A stretch of 64,000 bases of DNA from Perna viridis (taxonomy: Eukaryota). Positions 2,117 to 62,900 of the stretch are shown here, one piece after another (positions within the stretch are counted from its first letter, which is position 1; every line of letters begins with the position of its first letter). The stretch lies in the NCBI GenBank assembly GCA_037379345.1, contig CM074518.1, forward strand, positions 10,292,001-10,356,000, written 5' to 3'. The notes under the pieces are model-generated. The model made no database searches. It was not told the DNA's origin and worked only from the letters and a program-made list of their open reading frames with translations. The position numbers were made by a program, and so were the translations under genes.

Positions 2117-4740
2117 CAGACTAGGTACTGCAATACCTTAGGGATGTAATGACAACATCAAAAGTATAGGAAACCTTACAAGCCAATATAACAATAGCAT
2201 GAATGTGATGAATTTATTTGACAAAATTCCAAGACGGGAAAGGAGTCATGGCCATCGCCACTATACGTCACCTAAGTTACATGATGTCTCCATAGATGGT
2301 CTCCTTCCTTTCATACAAAAACCTCTTGGACTTCATCATATTAGAACCAAACTTTATTCTATACCTCTCACTCTACTACACTCCCTTTACAAAACAAGTC
2401 TTGACACTCCTGTTTCTGACCCCACCTCATCATTATACAGACTTGTTGCCATCATTTTGGATATTGGTTTCCACAGACTCTTTAAACCACTTTGTGTGAA
2501 AAGTCAAGATGAAGAAAAACGATCATTTCTTCCACTACCGTTTGTCAACAAAGGTATAGATGCAATTAATTTGGCTAACATCCTCCATCACAAAAACGTT
2601 ACCAACAAAATTCCCCCATATTTCAAAGACAAATCCATACCAATTATTTCATATTCCTATACTTCACCCATTGCATCCAAAATTTTCAATTATAAAAGGC
2701 TATTGCAGAACCTCGAGATTGAGGACTTCAAGGCTAAACCACCTGACTGTTCTTGCAAAAGTTCTCCATTCAAATATGGTCCTTCTGGTCGCGTCGTTAC
2801 AGGAGATCTAACCATTATCGAAAACGAATCTCTACGTAATATCCTTTCTAAAGGTCCCAAGTACCGTGAACCACGCTCCATAAATTGGAATTATAACTTT
2901 AAAGTTCTTATGGTTGCTGTCGAGGACTATGCAAGAAAATGGATAAAACGAGAACAAGAAGACATTGATTCTCTGTCAGAGTGGTTAAAGGCCGTGAGGT
3001 CTTTAATTTTGAAACGAATGAAAGTTTTAAGTAGGTCAATGAGTGCCAAGGCTACATCAGTTTTTGAAGACCCCGATGTAGCAAAAACATTGTCTACTAT
3101 ACATGACAAGTATGTTGTCGTACCAGCAGACAAAGCCCAAAACAACATTGTTTTTGTCTGCAAAACGTTTTATATCCAATGTTTATTATCAGAGGTAGAC
3201 GTAGGAAATAATAGCAGTGATAAGACCTATACTGCTACCACTCTCTCCAAAGAAGAGATTGTGGAAAACCATAAATCTGTGCTATCCTCTTTTGGTCTCT
3301 CTACCAAGGACGATGATTGTGATTTACCGTCTATGTACTGGATTCCTAAACTTCACAAGAATCCATACAAACAACGTTTCATAGCTGGATCTGCAAAATG
3401 TACCACCAAACCTCTTTCAAAACTTTTAACTTCTATACTCACAACTGTCAAAGAGGGTCTGCAGTCCTACCACAACACTTGTTACTCCCGTAGTGGTATT
3501 AATTCAATGTGGATCCTGAAAAATTGGAAAGATCTTTTGGAGACAATCAGTTCAAGACTATTATCTGAATATAATAGCATTAAAACCTATGATTTTTTAA
3601 CACTTTATACTTCTATTCCCCATACTCAGTTAAAATCCCGACTTAAAAACATTATACATCATTGTTTTTCCAAAAAAGATGGTACACCTAGATACAAATA
3701 TATAGTTCTTGGTAGAGATTCCTCATACTTTATAAGAAATAATTCCAAATCATCTTTCAAATATACAGAGGAAGATGTTTACAAAATGCTGGAATTTTTA
3801 ATCGACAACATATTTGTCCAGTGTGGTGGGCATGTTTTTCAACAAATGGTCGGCATTCCAATGGGAACAAATTGTGCTCCTTTACTTGCTGACCTATTCC
3901 TTCACTCTTATGAGGCTACTTTACAGCTGATCTGATCAGAAAGAAAGAATATCATTTGGCTTTATCCTTTAATCTCAGTTTCTGCTATATAGATGACATA
4001 TTATCTTTAAACAATCCTAATTTCGGGGATTTGATACATCGCATCTACCCAAGAGAACTTGAGATAAAGGATACTACAGACACTGTGAAGTCAGCCTCAT
4101 ATCTTGACCTACACTTAGAAATCGATGGTAAAGGAAAACTATTGACCAAACTTTACGACAAACGTGATGACTTTTCATTCAGAATTGTTAACTTTCCTTT
4201 CATCTGTGGCAACATCCCTTCGGCTCCTGCGGATGGAGTGTTCATATCACAACTCATACATTATGCCAGAGCTTGCCGAAACTACGCAGACTTTTTGTAT
4301 TGCGCTAGAACTCTAACAAATAGGCTTCTGGAACAGGGTTATGTTGCTACAAGATTGAAGTCATCACTACAGAAGTTTTATGGTCGTCATCATGAACTCG
4401 TGGATCGTTATGATGTATCCATCAGCACCATGAAAACTGATGTATTCAACGGGTCATAGTTTTCCTTTCCTCGTTTGTCTACCCCAGACTTGACTTTTTA
4501 TGATCAACTCGGCGGGTGTTTCTAGAAAAGCAGAGGACACTTACCCTACCGGTGCACCTGGTCCATGCTCCCAGCTTTTAGTGGAGTCCGAGTTGCTCAT
4601 TTACTTTTTTTACTTTGTATGTATGATTTTAGTTACTTTATGTTCTTTGTTGTATGTGTCTGTTTTCCATGTCTGGTCTTTGTCTCTGGATTATATTCTT
4701 TTGATTACCGCTATAACCTTGGTTCCCTTGATTACTCTTT
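2117..4740 (+). mobile_element. Penelope-like retroelement, Naiad-type (N-terminal GIY-YIG remnant, CxC linker, RT); 5'-truncated and frameshifted, with 3' terminal repeat
   Basis: In frame upstream of ORF 2199: LGTAIP*GCNDNI (end of a GIY-YIG endonuclease). Then PPDCSCK (CxC), VVPADKAQNN, YWIPKLHK, TYDFLTLYTSIPH, GIPMGTNCAPLLADLFL and, after a 1-nt deletion near 3917, YIDD, YLDL, LYDKRDDF. No endonuclease after the RT. Non-coding 3' end 4460-4740 recurs elsewhere in the window. Confidence 0.88.
2199..4459 (+). pseudogene. Frameshifted reverse transcriptase ORF of the Penelope-like element (ORFs 2199-3935 and 3956-4459 are one broken gene)
   Basis: Here GAGGCT-ACTTTA; the sister copy near 9735 reads GAGGCTGACTTTA. 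Restoring the G gives HSYEADFTADLIRKKEYHLALSFNLSFCYIDD and joins the two ORFs. Confidence 0.85.
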
Positions 4741-5815: not shown

Positions 5816-29745
<23,930 letters not shown>

Positions 29746-35318: not shown

Positions 35319-38300
35319 TTAATTGACTTTTTCATCACTTTCATCTAAATTTGATAAGTCTAGTTGTTGAATTTTGTTTTCTAAATCACTATCTTTTATG
35401 TCTGTTTGAAGTGAATCAATGTTTTCCTCATTACTTTGTCTTTGTTTGTCAGCTAGCTCAGACTCAATATTGATCACTTTTGCTTCCATTTCCCTCAATC
35501 TTGATTGTGCTTCACTAAGGTCACTTCGATAGGGAGACAGATGTATCTCAGAACTCTGTGTTACATTTGTAGCAACAGTACTGTGAAACTCTGAACCTGT
35601 AATCAAATTTTTTGTTATATACATAGCTAGTCTTCTAAAAGTAAGGGATCAGTGGTATTCACATCCTATACCATATATGGGGTAATTACAAGCAATGCAA
35701 CCATTTAAGCAACATTTTTACACTTTAATTAAATTCCTAAATGTCAACAATTATGTTTTTACATCAAGCTACAACAATCAATGTTTGTTGAAGTATCTTT
35801 GGGTAAAAGCAGCAAAAAAATATAATGCTACATAAATGTTAAAGAACAAATCAGAATAAAAATAATGATAAAAAATATACCAGAGGCTCACGTGAGCCTG
35901 TATCGCTCACCTGGTTTAATTACTTGCTAAATATTTCATATAATTTTGCGTAAATTTACAAGGAATTTTCCTTAGATGAAGATTTTCTTGTAATTTAAAG
36001 CATTGGTAAACAGGAATTATTGCATGGGACAGGTTGGAAAGGGGACATAATGCATAGTTTGCAACCCCAACATACTAAAATCCGGAACCAGGCCTTTAAA
36101 AATGCAGAAATTGCCATTGTTTTGCGGAATCCATGAAATTTCTGCAAAACACAGCGTTTCTTAGCCTCCAACATGATTACTTTGCTAAAAAACTAATCTT
36201 ATTAAACTAGGCATTTCACATCCAGTTTTGTATGGAAATATAGTTTACAAGGCACATAAATGCAAACAATGTCCATCAAATCTTAAGAATTATTTAAATA
36301 GACTGATTCATAAAGGACATAAATTTGACATTGTTGTCAGATCATTAAATCTTGTCTTTGTAGGAAAAAATATTGATACTCTTATTAGATCATTACATTA
36401 TAACTTAATCATTCATATTTTAGCATTTTAGTCATTGCACAACTTCTTGCTAGACCAACATAGTCTATGATGTTGCAGTTCTAAATCCTTTGGAAGTTTT
36501 GTAACTGATATTTTTTGTGTTGGGAGGCTTGAAGATTTGTCATCCTTATTTGTGTCCTGAGCTTGCTTTCAGTAACTGCGAGCATTCATTGTTTATACCT
36601 CATTTGTTTGTCTTCTATGTTATTGTTAATAATGGTTGAGGTACTTTTCTAATGAATTGGATGTATTTCAGGTTGATTTTTACTGTGTGTCTAACTTTGT
36701 ATTTATTTTAGCCTTTGACCGTATAGAGGGGGAGGGTTTGGATCCAACAAAACTAGTTTAACCCCGCTGCATATTGTTTGCGCCTGTCCCAAGGCAGGAA
36801 ATATAGTCACTGGCATGTAGTTGTCTTTTTTTTAAAACATTTTAGTTTCTTACCATAAATGATAAACTGATATAGTATTGAGGAAGGGCCGGACCTTTTT
36901 CGGGATGCTGGGATCAGAGGTTTTTAAGCTCAGGATTTCGGGATTTCTGAGAATTAAGCCCGGGATTTTGGGAAATAAATCCACCGGGAATCGGGATTTT
37001 AGCAGTTTTTAAGTTCCTTTGTTGTTCGGGATTTCAGGATTTAGTAAAAATAAAGTCGGGATTCCGGGATCAGACCCCCTCCAGCCTCCCCTCAGTATTG
37101 TGTTCACTGATTTATCCACTTTGTTTTTATTGGGGCAATTTAGAGCTTGCTACATGGAGGAAATTTCCCACTTGTTGAAGATCATGTGGCGACCTCTAGA
37201 TGTATATTTTCTCGAGCGGAAACTTTGGTTAAGTTAAGATCCACAGTGGCAGCCATTTTGAAATGGCAAAAGAATCACAAGCTTTCATCTCCTCATGCCA
37301 ACGATCATTTGTTTCCAGTTTTGTTTCATTTGGTCAAGCGGTTTCCGAGAAAAAGATTTTTACATGTTTTTCTCATAGGGTCCAATGTTAAAGTAAGATC
37401 CTCGGTGGCGGCCATTTTGAATTTCCGATTGGCACCAAAATCACAAACTTACATCCCTTCATAAAAGTGAACATTTGTGTCAAGTTTTGTTTAATTTGGT
37501 CAAGCGGTTTCCGAGAAGAAGATTTTTACATGTTTTTCCCATAGGGTCCAATGTTAAACTAAGATCCTCGGTAGCGGCCATCTTGAATTTCTGATCGCCA
37601 CCAAAATCACAAACTTTCATCCCCTCATATCAGTGAACATTTAATAGTGTCAAGTTTTGTTTAATTTGGTCAAGTGGTTTCCGAGAAGAAGATGTTTACA
37701 TGTTTTTCCCATAGGGTCCAATGTTAAACTAAGATCCTCGGTGGCGGCCATTTTGAATTTCCGATTGGCACCAAAATCACAAACTTTCATTCGCTCATAT
37801 CAGTGAACATTTGTGTCAAGTTTTGTTTAATTTGGTCAAGTGGTTTCCGAGAAGAAGATTTTTACATGTTTCTCCCATAGGGTCCAATGCTAAACTAAGA
37901 TCCTCGATGGCGGCCATCTTGAATTTCCGATCGGCACCAAAATCACAAACTTTCATCCCCTCATACCAGTGATCATTTGTGTCAAGTTTGGTTTTATTTG
38001 GCCCTGTGGTTTCAGAGAAGAAGATTGAAATGTAAAAGTTTACGGACGGACGACGGACTGACGACGACGGACGGACGGACGACGGACGGACGGACGACGG
38101 ACGCCAAGTGATGGCAAAAGCTCACATGGCCTTTGGCCAAGTGAGCTAAAAAGTAATTTACAAAAATGTGTTCAATAAAAGTAAAAAATTAGGAAAATAC
38201 ACGAAGTGTTACTTATTGTAGCACATATTTTTGTTATTCAAGCTTACCATACTATCATTTTTAACAATGTTTAATTACAGGTTAAAACATAATCAGATGA

Positions 38301-53900: not shown

Positions 53901-56900
53901 TGCATTTACATTAATTTGAAAGAAATCAACATACATTCATCTGGCAACTTTAGTTTTTGAACCCTATTAAAAAATCAGTTTATCTAATAAAAAACCTATG
54001 AGCTGAGAGTATCACAAAGCAATGTCTATAAAGCAATGTTATACAAGTCCATTGATTGTCTCCCTTTATTGCAGACAAATGCCAAAACCAAAGAGGAAGC
54101 CTGGTTCCTACAGGAGGTGGAGATAGAACATGTAAAGAAAAAGAAAAGATGGGTGTTTCTTATTAACAAGTGGTTCTCATTGTTTCATACAGATCAACAA
54201 CTTTCCAGAGAACTTTATCCAATGGTCTCATCTAATACAAGTAAGCAAGACATTGAACTTATCTTTTCATCTATTAGTGTACATGAACTTTTGTGTGGAA
54301 TGAGAAGTTGAATGATTTTTAGTGAATTTATTTTAGTGGGTGATCATCTGTACTTGTCAGTTTGTTTAAAAGGAAGTGAAAAATGCTCATTGAAGATACT
54401 TTTAATAAAAGATTAAGTGTCAAACAACTTGACTAAAGTACAATGATAGTCTATTATATATCACATTTGATATGAAATAAAAGATGGGGGAGTAGTACTG
54501 GACTTGTACTTTTTATTTTGATTATGAAGAAGCAGTATAACTTAGTTTTTAAGGCATTATCTAAATAAATGAATTATGTCTCCTCCACTTTTCATGTTTG
54601 TCCTGTTCATCACGCCTTTTTAGGCACAACTCCTTTGGGACTACTGCACCAAATTTCATGAAGCTTTGTAGGTAGTTAGGATTAATATGTAGTTATGCAA
54701 ATTACCAGGAATTTATGATCCACTGAATTTTGTGGAAGTTACTCCCCTTTGAACTATGGAATTGGGAGGACATAGTTTTTTTTCTGAATCAACTTTAATT
54801 TGATTCTGGTCTTATCAGAGATGGTAATATTGTAATTTATTAAGTACTCTTTATAATAAAAGAAAACATTATGAGAACATTCTTTTCCAACAAAGTTATT
54901 ATTGAGGCTAATCAAATACATTTCAGCATATGAAATACTCATTGTGACTGGTGACAAAGCTGGAGCAGGAACAAATGCCAACTGTTTCATCACAATTTTT
55001 GGAAAATCAGGGATTACACAAAAAATACCTCTAAAGAAAGGTGGAAAGGGAGAATTTAAACAGAACAGTAGTGAAATCTTTAAAATGAAATCTAACTGTG
55101 TTGGGCCAATGAGGAAGATAAGACTAGAACATGATAATACTGGGATAATGCCTGGCTGGTTTGTGGAAAGGGTAAGATGGTGTAATCAGTTAAAAATGAT
55201 CTGGAGTAGGTATTACAAAGCTGAATAAAGTCTTATTAGGCTATTATTTACATGAAATTGTCTATTACCTATGTACATTTCAATGAGACATAATGTATTT
55301 GTGCTAATTTTTATGCCATTAATGCCACTAAAAACCACACAGGGTGGGAGGGATTTTGTTTTAACCTGTTATTGTACCCAAAAGTGAATAGGGTGCTGTT
55401 TACAATTTTCCTTGCCAGAAAAACATGACAGAAATACTGTAAAGGTATCAATTTTCGTGGTGTACTAATTTTCCACTATTTCCACTATTTTTGCAGTGGA
55501 CTGAAAATGCAAAAATAGATTCTGCAAAATTGATTTTTTATGCTATGTAACCTTACAACAAATTTTTAGTTGAGTAGACATATTCCTGGGTACTTAATAC
55601 ATGTAGTTTGTTTTGTCTTTATAAAATCATTACAAATGTTTACCTCGGACCTCAAATGAAACTTTTATGTTGCACAGTTGTATGGATCAAGCTTTTAGTA
55701 GACAGTAAATACTGTTGCATTGTTTAAGCGTAGATATTAAAATGTCCTCTTGTGCAGAAATTTTGCTTATGGTCCAATGTCATGGAATGTATTACTGAGC
55801 TGATTTTTACTTATATTTTTAAAAATAATTAAAAATCTGGCACATTATGTTGACAGGTTGTAGTGACAGATTTAAAAAATCCACATTGGCGATATTTCTT
55901 CCCTTGTGGTGAGTGGCTATCTCGGAGAGAAGGAGATGGGAAAATCAGTCGAGATTTAGTTGGCAGCAAAGATGAATTTGCACTGAGGAAAGGTGAGTTT
56001 AAACCATGAACAACTTTAATTAGGATGAAAGTATTTTTAATTTCTTTTTAAGAAAAAAGATGTAGAACTCCTTAAAACTGAAATCTTTTCTCTCCCTTGA
56101 ATGGAAACTTATAAATATGACTTTAATCTTTCTTTAAAGCAAAAAAATATGATTTTTCCTCTATAGATTATAAATATACAATGACAATATTTACTGGAGA
56201 TAAAGCTGGAGCTGGTACAGATGCAAATGTTTATGTTACACTGTTTGGGGAGATGGGAGACTCTGGGGAGAACTTCCTGAAAAAATCGTTCAAGAGGAAC
56301 AGGTAAAATATACAACAGTTTTTCATGAATTGCTTACATTTAAAAAAAAATCTTGATTAAGTCTTTTACTGATACATTTTTCAACAAATCCATGTATTGG
56401 CATTTGAAATTGTGTAGTACACATAATAATTAAGTACACAGACTATATAGTAGTTTTGATATTCTATATAGAAGAACTGCTTGATGTTTTCAGTAACTTG
56501 AGAATATGAAAATATATTACCAGTACAGATTAACTGCTATCAGTTATCACAACTGTACACAATGTTCACTATTTCTTTACAGTAAGAATGAATTTATTCT
56601 GAAGTGCCCATGTTTAGGGAGACTAGACAGAATAAGAATTGGTCATGACAACTCTGGTTTTAAAGCAGGATGGTATCTGGATAAAGTAAGTATCAATTCT
56701 ATCTCTATCTGTAGGAGACAATTAAAGAGAAGGTAATTAACTGTAGTTAGGGGAATCGTTAAAATTAATAACTAGGGTTTTATCCCTAGAACATTTATAC
56801 TTTTGTTAATTGATCTTTTTAAAAGTGTAATTTGTTGTCATTACATGTTGAAGGTAGACTTGTAACAAGTCCCTTTATATATGAAAAGTTAATTGATTGC

Positions 56901-59900
56901 ATGTATTTGTCTGATAGTAAATCCACTAATTATCACTGCATAGAGCAGCATTTAGTCATGGCTTATCAGAGAGGTTTATTACACAGATTTTCTGTGCCAT
57001 ATACATAATAAAGAGGGACTTGTAGCAAGTCTAATGTTGATAGTTTAAAAATAGATTTTTAAGAAATATCAGCATTTAGATTGAACTAAATCAATTTTGA
57101 AGACCCAAATAACTTTGATGATTTTAATATAGAAACACTTAAGTAATGTTATTACAGCTGTTCATGGTTTGTACAGTGATTAAATGATAACAGATGTATA
57201 TACATAGTCTTTGTTTAGACTTATAGGAAAACTACATGACTGATAACAAATGTAATCCATCAAGTAACTGTCTGAAACATTCTTATTGTCCTCTGCCAAT
57301 CTCCTAAAATGAGCTATTAATTAAAATATACTCTTGTCCTAATGAATGTTCTGTTGTTTTGGACTACCCCTAAGGCACAACATAGTGAGTTTTCTCCCTT
57401 CACATGAAATTATTTCCCTTTGTCACCTATGGTAGAGATTTTCCGCATTCATACCACCTTGGTGTTGGAGTCATAAATGATAGGAATCCAAGGTGGGGTT
57501 TCTCGTCCCATTGTTTCCTCAGGAAGGCTGTAAGGAGATAAAACATGAGTAACTCAATGGTTAACATAAGCTTTTCAGATAATTGATAAAAGATAATTAG
57601 TTTAAGTTACAAAAACATACTTCTGCATTGTCTTTCATGCAAAATGTTCTATAGTTTTGTCCGCTATTGTAACATGCAAGGTCACATACATTTTGTTATA
57701 CTGGTGTCTGCACTTCTGTTCATCACAGTTTATGGAATCTACTCCTTTGAAACCGATCAACAGAATTTGTTCAAATTTTGTGGGATTATTATTTACCATA
57801 TGTAGTTGATCATATTGTGCTACCATTTTGTTTGACAAATTTTAAAGTCCTGAGGTATGGAACTTTTTCACTTCCTCTTAACTTGCGGCTGGGGGTGGGA
57901 GGCACATGGCTACGCAAAAAAAATCTTGTTACTTCGAAAATCATTCTGCTCTTTATAGTTAGAATATAATACTAATAAAAATCATTGAAGTCTAGGTGAA
58001 AGTTGAATGTAAGGACCCTTTTTTCTATCCACTTCTTCCTTGACGCAAAAGATGATTAAATCTTATTTAAATAAATAAAATAATCATTGCTTATAATTTG
58101 TTGAGAAATGTTTTGCATGTACAATTCTCATGCATTCACATGCTTATCTAATTGGTAATCAACATGATCTTTCTCTGTGTGATTGTTTATTCAGAACTTT
58201 AAAATTTCATGGTAGAAAGGAGCTGTGATGAGAACAATCCCCTAGACATATATAACTTACATTGATTTGATGAACAGGCATGAAAATTATCACATAATTA
58301 ATAGAATGATAAATCAGATGTTTGTACCTTGTGGTACTGAAGTAAAAGCCAAGGTCATGCCAATGAATGAAACATGTCTTGTTAATCAATTAACAGTATG
58401 TTATTGTATCTGGTCTGTCTTTTGGTTCAGTGTGATTATAGTCTGATATAGTTTTATCATAGATATTTAGGATATACCAGTAATTATTAGTAAATAACTT
58501 ACACAATCAATGAAGTTTTGATACAGGAAATGTGGTTTCATAAAGGGTTTAGTGTACTAAATTTGCTTTTCCTTTTTTGATTTTAGTTTGTTTTTGTTGA
58601 AGAAAAATGATCTTATGAAGAGATTTCGTTTTGTGTTGAAGTTTGTGTTAAACCATCATAAATAGATAGTTTAAGTTGGCATACTAGTAACAGCATTAGA
58701 ATTGAACAGATAAATATAAACAAAACTAACCTTTCATGCCCATTGGTGACGGGTGCTTAATGTCTACTTTAACTTCCTTCTCTGTTTCACCTCCAATGAA
58801 TTGACAGTGGTCTTGTCCATATCCATATTGGTCAGCAATATCCAGAAATTCTTCATCAAGTGAATTGCCTAAGAAGATTTTGTACCTAGTTGGAGAGCAG
58901 AGCTGTACCCCAACATATGTCCCAAGTCCATTTTTTGTTACTTTGTTACGCTTGACTAATTGTTTTTTGTTACAAGCATTGCTCAGCGAGTGTTGTGTAA
59001 AGTTGAATTCTATCCATCTGTCATGACCTAACTTTTGTTCTAAGTGGATGAGGTCTAACACTTTATTCATGAGATCATGGTTGTTTTTTAGGATGGTTTG
59101 ATTTCGTTCAATTTCTAGTATTCGTTGTGCATGATCCTGGAGGGATGTTAGCTGCCACTCAATACTTTGAGTTTTAGAGTTCAGTTCAGATAGTTTTATG
59201 TCCAATTTTCTGTACCCAGTTGATGAGTTTTTCTTCAAAGCTTCAATACTTCTTTCAGAAAATAAATAGTCCATTTCTAGGTCTTGTAGCCTGTCTTCCA
59301 AGTCAGCCACATTGGTTTTCTCAGAAATTTCTTCTTTAAGCCGATTTTCAAGTTCGCTGATGTCAGACTTCATACTTTCAAAGTTGACATGAGTTTCATT
59401 ATGGTTGTGTATGATTGTTTTCTTGAAATGATTTACTAGAGTTAGTGATAGGTTGCTCTGTCTTTCTAGCTGAGAAATTTTGTTCTCAAATGAAGAGACA
59501 CTTGACTGAATTCCCAACAAACTCATTTCTAAATTAGTTTTAATACTCTCTACCTTAGTCTGGATTTTAGAATCAAGAGCCACATCATTAGTGTAACTAT
59601 CTATTCTCCTGTCCATTGATTGAATATCAGTTAGTATCTGTGATACTGTCCTATTTAGTATTTTTATATTATCAGAAAAGTTAACTTTTTGTACAAGTCT
59701 AGTAAGATCATGTTGTTGATCTGTGAGATTTGATGCCAATCCTTGGAATTTCTCATCCAGACTATTAGTATTGTCACCAAGTTCTGTAACTTTTTTGTCT
59801 AACTTAACACTGAAGTCTCCTATAGCCTTCTCTAGTTTTGCTTCAACTTCCTTTCTCACTAATTCAATTTTATCATTGATTTCTTTTGCCATATTCTTTT

Positions 59901-62900
59901 GTGCCATGCTTTGAAGCATATTGATGGTCTTTTTTAAACTTTCTGTTAGTATATATGGGTTCTCAGATATTTCTGACTTGGTAGAATTTCTGTTTGTTAT
60001 GTTTGTAGTAGATTCAAAGTCATTTGTAATATTTACAGAAACTTCACTTTCCAAATCCTCCACAGAAACATTTACATTATCATTTATTGTATGAATTGTT
60101 CTTGCCATTTCTTGCATTGTTCGATCTTTGGTGACACCTTGATCAGCGGCCATATTTAGCATATTTATTTGTTGATTGACTGGTTGTATGGAAGCTTCTT
60201 CACTTATATGCTCTCCTATTTCATCAGAGGAACCTATTTCTTCATTTTGGTCCAGCATTTTGACTGTCATTCTATTTTTCATACTTTTAAGAATTTCTTC
60301 TTTCACATATTGCATTTCAGCCAAGATAAGTGGTTTGATGGCAGATGTTAGTTTGTCATCTGTTAATGTTTCCATCTTCTCCTTATTGTTTTCTTTTATG
60401 ATTTCTTTAAGTAATTCTTTTCTAAGGTCTTCCTTCATTTGTTGTAGTTCAGCCATAACATAAGGCCGTAATGGGTCAAGAAGGGTGTCAGGTTCACTTT
60501 GTTGTGTTTTCTTGTTGCTTTCACTAGTTTTAGAGAGAGCTTCCTCTAAAGCTTTAATTTTACCATCCATGTGTTTGAAATAAGTAGATTCTTTTGCTAT
60601 CATAAGTTCTAGTTGTTCCACTTTATCATTATAGCGATTCATATTTAGTACTATCTCAGGTAATCGTATTTCAAGAGCACCAACAAGTGTTTTATAATGG
60701 TTGAATTGTGATTCCATTGACTGCATTTTACGTAGTAACTGTTCATTCATACTACAGTCACTTTTTATACTTTCTTTAGGAATAGTTAGTGTCAGAACAC
60801 ATGATTCCTGACCTTTTTGTACTGACACCTCAGACTGTGGTGCTCCAATGGTGTTACAAATCCAAAATGAAATAAAAAATAAGCCATGCACAAATCGTGC
60901 GACTTTTCTGAAAGCATTAATTGTGAACATTGTAAAATTTAGTGTAGCCAATGGCGGCACAACTTAAAGCTTTCCTACTGTACAATACTATATGTTGGTC
61001 ATTACTATAAATATAAATCCAACTTGAAGATTCTGGCCATGCCTGTGTTAGTCATTTCACAATTGTAAACAATTACATAACTGTAAGTACCACACTTCCT
61101 TTGTATTAATGAACTTCTCTTATCTTCGGCAGTTCATTAAAAAATCAGGCAATTTGTCTGCGTTATGTTTAGTGTCAATTTATACATCACAAGGAGTTTA
61201 CCTTCAAATCATGTTGAAATCCTCTTCTGAAAAATCTCAAGTTACTTATTATTCACAAACAGAATGAACTTATGTTATTGTTTCTGAGCACACTTCCTCT
61301 TACCTACTTTTCTTGAAGCATTTATGTCAAGATGTTGAATTCCTTTCTCTCTCTGATCTTTCTTTTTCTAGAATATGGTTGTATCAGTTAATAGCCTGTT
61401 TACACATGTATATATCTCCCCACAGTATATAATCTGTTCCCTGAAGGTTTACTCAGCAGGGAGCCAGAGATAATGGAAATTTCACCTGGTATTCTTATAA
61501 AGGTGTCAAGGCTTTCAGTTTTGGGAGAATTACTTCAAAGGAATCTATCTTAAAGTCAAATTAATTAGTTTAGAATCAAATTATAAAATCCAGTTTTCTG
61601 ATAATTTGTTGATTTGATAGTGATTTTCTGGAGTTTCTTACAGAAATTTCACATAAAAATTAGTTCTACACCTGCATAAAATTTTGATATTATGATTACA
61701 TAAATTACATAACTATATATTAATTAATAATACTAAATTACTGAAGAGGAGAAAGTTAAAAATTGAATGGATATCTAAAGTTCAAATTTTACAATAAAGT
61801 GAAGACTTTTTTGTGTATTATTTAAGGCTGTTTTTTTTTATAATAAAAAGATAAAAAATGCAAACCAATAACTGTTTACACAGACATATTTAAGTAGCCG
61901 TCTTTGTAAGAATCATGCAAAATCTGAAAAATGTGATATACCCCAAAAAAGGCTACATATTTTTATTTTTGTAATTAAGTTGTTTTATGGGTCTGTACTG
62001 TGAAATGAGTAATTATTCATTCAAATCTGCCTGCTCTTAGGACATAATCAACATTGAAAATCCAGTAGATTCTATTGTATTTGAGCGTCATTTACAGAGT
62101 TATCTCCCTTAATTTGGAAATCTACAGTGCATTCTATATAATTTTTATCTCCTAAGAGCACGGGTTATATGAAAAACCACATATTATTTTCTGTTAACTA
62201 TGACATTTCAAACAAAATATCAAAAATAAAAATATGTAGGCTTTTTACCCATGAATCACATTTTGCATGATCCTTAGCTGGAATGCTACTTAAAATAATT
62301 GAAATGCTTTTTCAATAAGAATTCATATTACCCCCCATTTTTTGGTTCTGTACTAATGATAATGGTATAAACTAATTGAATGCTAATGGTCAGGGATAGG
62401 CTTATCTACAGTTAGGGTGTTGAATTTATTACTTATCCTTTATCAGATGGTATAGATTGATATTTTTGTGGAAAGGTTCTTTTCCTTATCTCTTTAACTA
62501 CATGATGTATATATTTTAGTAGAAGTCAGTTTTCATATTAAGTGGGTGGAATAGATCTGACACAGATATTGCAATACACCACATCAGTAACCATTAAGCT
62601 ATATTTTCATTAACATTTTTGGGGGTTTCTCCTCTATGATAAATAGATAAATAGAGAATTGACTTGTAAAACTAGATTTTCACACTTATTACCATTTTAA
62701 TAGTATTTTGAACGATACTTTTTTAAAAAATTTTTCAAAAACCTTACTCTGTTATGAAAAAAAAATTCACAGTTATCTGTAAATGAAAAATGGACTTAAG
62801 CCAGGATTGGGTAGAGAGATGAAATGATTGTATAAAATCCTAGGTGTAAAGATAGTGGGCTTCCATAGGTGTCTTATAAACTGATTTCTAATGTCTAAGT

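Follow-up and report, generated by a model that had tools for sequence, protein, structure and literature searches.

A nested gene of Perna viridis predicted to encode a secreted stalk-and-head protein with a C-terminal TARSH_C domain

The C-terminal domain TARSH_C is known from vertebrate ABI3BP (TARSH) and FNDC1. In the stretch of Perna viridis DNA analysed here (64,000 nucleotides (nt); NCBI GenBank assembly GCA_037379345.1, contig CM074518.1, positions 10,292,001 to 10,356,000; hereafter the window), an open reading frame (ORF) of the minus strand ends within such a domain. This raises the question whether the locus encodes an ordinary molluscan counterpart of ABI3BP and FNDC1 or a protein of a different kind. 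A preliminary description, made from the letters of the window, had proposed the latter: a nested antisense gene whose product joins a signal peptide and a coiled coil of ~600 amino acids (aa) to an ABI3BP/FNDC1 C-terminal domain, without fibronectin type 3 (FN3) domains. The best explanation overall, which we consider likely, is a secreted stalk-and-head protein of ~766 aa that is encoded by a nested gene and belongs to a pan-molluscan group.

Gene structure and transcript

The nested gene is an intact, transcribed two-exon gene of the minus strand with the following parts (positions are those of the window):

57131..61433, minus strand: whole transcription unit, an mRNA of ~3 kb with two exons; contigs of 2857-3076 nt in runs X1, X3 and X6
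58731..61433, minus strand: exon 1, 5' untranslated region (UTR) and coding sequence 60930-58731 (733 codons and the first base of a split codon)
60931 to ~61190-61433, minus strand: 5' UTR, ~260-500 nt, with short upstream ATGs inside
57528..58730, minus strand: intron, 1203 nt, GT..AG, phase 1, within the TARSH_C domain; seen in four RNA runs
57427..57527, minus strand: coding part of exon 2, the last third of TARSH_C, with the end W-Y-E-C-G-K-S-L-P and a stop
57131..57426, minus strand: 3' UTR, ~300 nt; contig ends at 57131, 57153 and 57169

The ORF at 58726-60960 is present. Translation probably begins with the ATG at 60930, from which a signal-peptide-like leader is read. At its other end, the donor GT (58730/58729) overlaps the TAG that closes the ORF, and the exon ends in phase 1 with base 58731. 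The acceptor AG (57529/57528) precedes exon base 57527, from where the matching frame runs to a TAG at 57429-57427. This hidden exon of 101 nt (57527-57427), reached through the donor at 58730, had been postulated from the letters and is now found in RNA. The RNA evidence comprises four runs over window positions 56400-62300, with raw stranded reads from X21 and contigs from other studies for X1, X3 and X6. In X21, the joint 57527/58731 is crossed by 26 raw reads with 16 start points and is bordered by CT..AC on the plus strand, that is GT..AG on the minus strand. X1, X3 and X6 deliver one contig each (57131/57153/57169-57527 joined to 58731-61190/61344/61433). Read depth in X21 is 35-55 across the exons, with the first mate always on the plus strand, as minus-strand RNA gives in a usual stranded library, and RNA depth within the intron is ~0.

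No other splice joint touches the nested gene in the four runs, and none was found upstream of exon 1. Given the contigs, the spliced reads and this lack of further joints, the mRNA consists of two exons and has no upstream coding exon. Consequently, FN3 domains are excluded from the product of the nested gene; a Pfam search likewise gave no fn3 profile match in exon 1 or in full-length orthologues, so the proposed absence of FN3 stands. The canonical AATAAA was not seen near the 3' end of the gene, where an ATTAAA is located at ~57125.

Just upstream of the transcript start, at window positions 61890-62300, RNA depth is very high on both strands in every one of the four runs and amounts to thousands in contig depth. 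Variant letters are numerous here, and loose ends occur at 61888-61890 and 62293-62295. This region looks like a highly repeated, transcribed element of ~400 bp.

Domain architecture of the protein

The protein is divided as follows, from the N-terminus to the splice site in the head:

60844..60930, minus strand: predicted signal peptide, aa 1-29, from hydropathy; basic n-region, 13-residue hydrophobic core, T-I-G before A-P
60754..60801, minus strand: Cys-x14-Cys motif, aa 44-59, C-V-L-T-L-T-I-P ... C, conserved in relatives
60256..60747, minus strand: stalk segment 1, aa 62-225, helical and heptad-rich by AlphaFold2 and a heptad heuristic
59959..60255, minus strand: linker, aa 226-324, disordered, rich in acidic residues, Ser and Asn; AlphaFold2 predicted local distance difference test (pLDDT) ~30-36, without secondary structure
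59029..59958, minus strand: stalk segment 2, aa 325-634, helical and heptad-rich by AlphaFold2 and the heptad heuristic, with the conserved sequon N511
58731..59016, minus strand: first two thirds of TARSH_C (Pfam PF21731), aa 639-733, with C653, C678 and C709

The head was recognised by profile search over both exons. PF21731 matches exon 1 at aa 639-721 (profile positions 1-80 of 127, 101.4 bits, E 7.5e-29) and exon 2 with profile positions 90-127, the latter at 21.4 bits alone (E 4.4e-4), where the curated cut-off is 27 bits. Thus, the ORF holds only part of the domain and splicing supplies the rest, and the earlier assignment of the domain to the ABI3BP/FNDC1 C-terminus is confirmed. While the exons of the window were searched separately, analyses of the whole domain employed L002, a spliced transcript contig of a related mussel, together with database orthologues. 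The spliced orthologues P0003 (Mytilus trossulus) and P0004 (from L002) reach 134 bits over profile positions 1-127, and exon 2 shares 82% identity with the naturally spliced mussel transcript (tblastn). A profile scan of the 723-Mb genome found this locus as the sole one with TARSH_C (103.5 bits).

In an alignment of 61 sequences (A1), four cysteines (C29, C54, C85, C137) as well as Y59, D76, D83 and R113 are invariant. Of the four cysteines, exon 1 of the window encodes C653, C678 and C709; the W-Y-E-C-G of exon 2 adds the last. With the same 61 sequences, AlphaFold2 modelled the head at a pLDDT of 93.4 and a predicted template modelling score of 0.88. Foldseek found nothing for this model in the PDB at E <= 0.001, and in a sequence profile search of the PDB the stalk matched coiled coils and the head had no match, so that no TARSH_C structure was found. 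From an all-against-representatives structural search and a second look, SRCR domains emerged as the sole solved domains matching the TARSH_C model over most of its length (Z 2.5-5.0, below the level of a shared fold; root-mean-square deviation 2.7-4.1 A over 76-92 residues). The weakly matched carriers are enteropeptidase, CD5, CD163, hepsin, factor I, CD6, DMBT1 and SCARA1/5. Pfam gave no SRCR profile match in exon 1 or the orthologues. Thus, the modelled TARSH_C domain weakly resembles SRCR domains, and no solved fold is clearly matched.

At the opposite end, the leader carries three basic residues, a hydrophobic core of ~13 residues and small residues at positions -3 and -1. Its G/A-P boundary recurs in mytilid relatives, in which the leader ends ...N-G/A-P. 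Hydropathy and this common boundary agree with the signal-peptide-like N-terminus that had been noted before. Alternatively, the leader might be an uncleaved signal anchor, which would turn the product into a type II membrane protein whose head sits distally on a coiled-coil stalk, comparable to the class A scavenger receptors (SCARA1/MARCO/SCARA5), which also set an SRCR-type head on a coiled-coil stalk. The AlphaFold2 monomer draws aa 2-28 as one helix, and the weakly SRCR-like head would fit as well, since SRCR domains cap such receptors. However, the short core, the small residues at -3 and -1 and the conserved boundary argue for cleavage, and there is no cytoplasmic tail beyond 12 residues. 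In contrast to the class A scavenger receptors, the window protein comprises neither a membrane anchor nor a collagenous segment, and we regard a signal anchor as very unlikely.

Not counting the leader, the protein has six cysteines, four of them in the head. The other two, C44 and C59, belong to the motif C-V-L-T-L-T-I-P-x7-C. The Cys-x14-Cys motif was found in 46 long-form sequences, and the pattern also occurs in short forms of amphioxus and hemichordates. A conserved pair of cysteines directly ahead of a heptad-rich helical stalk is therefore real, as had been suspected.

The stalk itself differs from what was first described. With 33 family sequences as input, an AlphaFold2 monomer model of exon 1 places helices at aa 62-135, 154-225, 325-415, 421-537 and 541-634, with a pLDDT of 70-87 for those of segment 2, while aa 226-324 are unstructured. 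The heptad heuristic flags 419 of the 573 residues from aa 62 to 634, compared to 164 +/- 53 (maximum 313) in 200 shuffled sequences, and its windows in segment 2 span aa 342-631. In the PDB, a sequence profile including the stalk matches coiled coils such as the myosin rod. Thus the heptad-rich, helical nature of the stalk holds, but instead of a single coiled coil of ~600 aa there are two helical blocks with a disordered linker of ~100 aa between them. The term 'N-glycosylation-rich' has to be withdrawn: the 12 N-X-S/T sequons compare to 8.0 +/- 2.4 expected from composition, and 78 of 1000 shuffles reach that number. Four of them (287, 300, 310, 315) fall into the linker; N511 is the sole widely conserved one (25 of 33 relatives) and N643 is partly conserved. 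As an architecture, stalk and head are well supported.

A molluscan orthologous group

Relatives of the window protein are easily overlooked. A word-seeded search with the P0003 domain found four mytilid proteins only (56-100% identity), and the family became visible by an exhaustive HMMER search with the L002 domain, which gave 294 clusters at 50% identity. About 30 of the 294, with proteins of 600-850 aa, have in common a leader, a Cys motif, a heptad-rich stalk and a C-terminal TARSH_C domain. The motif of these long forms reads C-[VIL]-x-S-[LF]-x-[VI]-P-[KR]-[DE]-x-[IMV]-K-x-[ST]-C. Without exception, the named members of the long form belong to the molluscs: bivalves, gastropods, a cephalopod and a chiton. 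The architecture was seen in Pecten, Sinanodonta, Mactra, Biomphalaria, Patella, Haliotis, Argonauta and the chiton Liolophura; examples are Pecten maximus XP_033751257, Biomphalaria glabrata XP_013065659, Patella vulgata XP_050409623, Haliotis rufescens XP_046335491 and Liolophura sinensis XP_064602221. While identity of the window protein to other mytilids is 56-59%, it drops to 18-30% overall against other molluscs, and the lengths of linker and stalk vary. Based on sequence comparison, we assign the window protein to a pan-molluscan orthologous group of uncharacterised proteins. This survey bears out the uncharacterised invertebrate family that the preliminary description had suggested: a known domain sits on an undescribed stalk-and-head architecture, the members of which are already in databases under uninformative names.

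These names are in part wrong ('cytospin-A-like', 'leucine-rich repeat-containing protein DDB_G0290503', 'Fibronectin type 3 domain'). If taken literally, the first two would suggest an intracellular, structural coiled-coil protein, and the long helical content is compatible with that. However, the names stem from coiled-coil composition, and no leucine-rich repeat or cytospin profile match was obtained. The signal-peptide-like leader, the conserved paired cysteines and a head that otherwise occurs only with extracellular modules argue against an intracellular protein as well, and we consider such a protein extremely unlikely.

Gene models are affected too. P0003 and the transcript-derived P0004 end exactly where the predicted splice product ends, whereas P0001 and P0002 read through into the conserved intron, as the raw ORF of the window does, and lose the last exon. 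In P0032, P0049, P0073, P0080, P0082, P0087, P0095, P0111 and others the TARSH_C match stops at query position ~90-109. These stops look like systematic truncation of the last exon by ORF callers, as in P0001 and P0002. Automatic gene models thus often drop the last exon of the family, thereby losing one third of TARSH_C, and mislead by name.

A shared intron and an old nest

Besides its protein, the location of the gene is conserved as well. It lies antisense in an intron of a PLAT-repeat (LOXHD1-like) gene of the plus strand, whose nearest exons are:

54929-55177, 56175-56306 and 56579-56687, plus strand: host PLAT exons (PF01477), directly preceding the host intron in which the nested gene lies

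An RNA contig covers the host exon 56579-56687, and further plus-strand PLAT exons extend from position 10357949 to 10390227 of the contig (C8), starting ~1.9 kb past the end of the window.

As in the window, the orthologues of Mytilus, Pecten, Biomphalaria and Patella are split by an intron after domain position 109; neither Ptychodera nor Branchiostoma shares it. These four mollusc genera also have the gene antisense within a PLAT-repeat gene (product of ~2540-2564 aa), although for Patella this rests on its gene calls. The three host exons by the 3' end of the nested gene find their best matches in Mytilus, Pecten and Biomphalaria (67-87% identity) just beyond the nested gene, with order kept and on the opposite strand, which indicates the same host intron in these three genera. 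Since the nest is common to bivalves and gastropods, it is older than the split between them. The relatives in Ptychodera and Branchiostoma are not nested in this manner. This adds a further example to the very old nested gene pairs.

Relation to ABI3BP, FNDC1 and other TARSH_C proteins

The window protein has several features in common with ABI3BP and FNDC1: a C-terminal TARSH_C domain with four invariant cysteines, the motif G-x-G-E-D-H-C and W-Y-E-C-G at or near the C-terminus. In contrast, the vertebrate proteins comprise 900-2200 aa with no heptad signal, and their FN3 domains stand upstream of TARSH_C where the window protein shows the Cys motif and the coiled-coil stalk. In a quick IQ-TREE analysis, the mollusc group (Shimodaira-Hasegawa-like approximate likelihood ratio test (SH-aLRT) 90) branched outside the vertebrate FN3-type clade (SH-aLRT 99); this tree is based on the domain only (129 columns), drawn by midpoint and unresolved in its backbone. 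The fish member P0064 shows fn3 upstream of TARSH_C.

One might therefore ask whether the window protein is simply the molluscan counterpart of vertebrate ABI3BP/FNDC1, an ordinary matrix protein that does the same job as ABI3BP and whose N-terminal part has drifted. It is encoded by the sole TARSH_C gene in the genome, and its head is ~37-42% identical to the vertebrate domain, as expected for such a counterpart. However, FN3 and any proline-rich or mucin-like region are lacking, and the mollusc group stands apart in the tree. Moreover, the form with Cys motif and coiled coil is found in amphioxus and hemichordates as well, so that the architecture is not a degeneration restricted to molluscs. 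Thus, the window protein is not an FN3 protein of the ABI3BP/FNDC1 type, and a role as plain counterpart appears rather unlikely to us.

The amphioxus and hemichordate proteins (Branchiostoma, Glandiceps, Ptychodera) are shorter and consist of a Cys motif, a short coiled coil and TARSH_C. Their motifs read C-A-Y-T-I-A-I-P..C, C-V-Y-S-F-Q-V-P..C, C-M-Y-S-L-V-V-P..C, C-A-H-T-F-V-L-P..C and C-A-Y-T-F-I-V-P..C. With a small hidden Markov model of the motif, short forms of hemichordate or unknown origin ranked top among the non-training proteins, with insignificant scores. Elsewhere, TARSH_C follows trypsin, WAP or EGF domains, precedes a CUB-EGF-Ig-FN3 series or occurs in six repeats (in the nemertean Lineus), and its companions are always extracellular modules (FN3, trypsin, WAP, EGF, CUB, Ig).

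Some of these relatives deserve mention on their own. In P0068 and P0116 (Anneissia japonica and an unnamed species), P0097 (Saccoglossus) and P0017, a trypsin-like serine protease domain is followed by a C-terminal TARSH_C domain, a curious pairing given that the SRCR domains to which TARSH_C has weak structural similarity belong to membrane serine proteases. P0164 (Branchiostoma floridae C3ZG03, 223 aa) is an older gene model that shares a 90% cluster with P0033, a protein with Cys motif, coiled coil and TARSH_C; UniRef names it 'Fibrinogen C-terminal domain-containing protein', while Pfam shows only the start of TARSH_C. The bacterial protein P0024 (Panacagrimonas sp., 3138 aa, a type I secretion target) gave 21 weak matches to query positions 83-137 with a summed E of 9.5e-26, none of which reached a domain E <= 0.01 in a local phmmer search. 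Either a compositional repeat or distant bacterial kinship with the C-terminal half of TARSH_C could account for these matches.

Likeness to olfactomedins and angiopoietins

In its plan, the window protein recalls the olfactomedins (noelin/OLFM1, myocilin) and the angiopoietins with ANGPTL: behind a signal peptide, a short Cys motif of the form C-x-(Y/C/L)-(T/S)-(F/V/L)-x-(V/I/A)-P...C is followed by a coiled coil, and the chain ends in a globular head. In contrast to these families, the window protein carries neither an OLF nor a fibrinogen-like head, so that the likeness is one of working principle and not of membership. Pfam gave no OLF match in the window protein and no fibrinogen_C match in exon 1 or the orthologues.

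The preliminary description had called the Cys pair reminiscent of angiopoietin-like and myocilin proteins. The similar pattern is there, but sequence searches did not establish homology: Noelin-1 scored 11.3 bits at E 0.39 (cut-off 25; Pfam at E <= 10), the match lying over the coiled coil only. A word-seeded search with Cys motif and stalk of amphioxus P0045 returned Branchiostoma orthologues only and no angiopoietin. An Atlas lead to Noelin was discarded as well; its score of 0.81 is below the trust level, and one third of shuffled proteins reach it.

The related idea that TARSH_C takes the place of another head fared better outside the molluscs. Amphioxus P0055 joins a Noelin-1 N-terminus (PF12308, 28.4 bits, over the cut-off of 25) to TARSH_C, and this sequence is the clearest support that TARSH_C can replace the olfactomedin head on an oligomerising stalk, while the N-terminus of the window protein is itself insignificant against Noelin-1.

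Proposed explanation

How might such a protein work? We suggest that the product of ~766 aa would enter the secretory pathway, where its signal peptide would be cleaved. The mature chain would then consist of the Cys-x14-Cys segment, two heptad-rich helices, a flexible and probably glycosylated linker and a compact, disulfide-bonded TARSH_C head. The helices may pair in parallel to a dimeric or trimeric coiled coil, with the N-terminal cysteines stapling or cross-linking the chains, so that two or more TARSH_C heads would be displayed at one end of a long stalk. Weak contacts between heads and ligand could thereby sum to strong binding of a partner in the matrix or on a cell surface. Such multivalent use of heads is known from angiopoietins, olfactomedins and class A scavenger receptors, and it is from the architecture and this analogy that we infer secretion, parallel oligomerisation, disulfide stapling and multivalent ligand binding.

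Several points weigh against this proposal. In the AlphaFold2 monomer, a parallel coiled coil and a folded-back helical bundle cannot be told apart, and the pLDDT is <50 in the region of the Cys motif. The N-terminal likeness to angiopoietin and myocilin is at pattern level only, and the sequon count is within chance. Furthermore, literature searches found no paper on the TARSH_C domain or the mollusc family.

One might speculate further that TARSH_C is a divergent, SRCR-like ligand-binding head, that the ancestral bilaterian form was a disulfide-stapled coiled-coil oligomer in the style of angiopoietins and olfactomedins, that the FN3-rich ABI3BP and FNDC1 of vertebrates are derived, and that molluscs have kept the gene in the LOXHD1-like intron since before the bivalve-gastropod split. 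Taken as a whole, we would give this scenario little chance. If true, the long-kept nest could reflect shared regulation, e.g., in ciliated sensory cells and the extracellular covering.

Independent of this scenario, the human carriers of TARSH_C, ABI3BP and FNDC1, recur in the retrieved expression studies of matrix, valve disease and cancer, and the mollusc family shows the domain in a much simpler setting, a stalk with one head. With orthologues across the phylum and short relatives in amphioxus and acorn worms, it is a convenient system for questions on TARSH_C binding and multivalency.

Other features of the window

On the plus strand, positions 2199-4459 hold two adjacent ORFs (578 and 167 aa) with reverse-transcriptase-like motifs recognised by eye (..Y-I-D-D-I-L..) and no significant Pfam match; this is probably a decayed retroelement. 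At positions 27749-28212, both strands show ORFs of a repeated unit of ~15 aa, which reveals a tandem DNA repeat of ~45 bp. A minus-strand ORF of 101 aa at positions 35319-35624 is of coiled-coil character with a weak ATG16-like match (E 3.4e-4, below the cut-off) and may represent an exon of a different gene that lies upstream of the PLAT-repeat gene.

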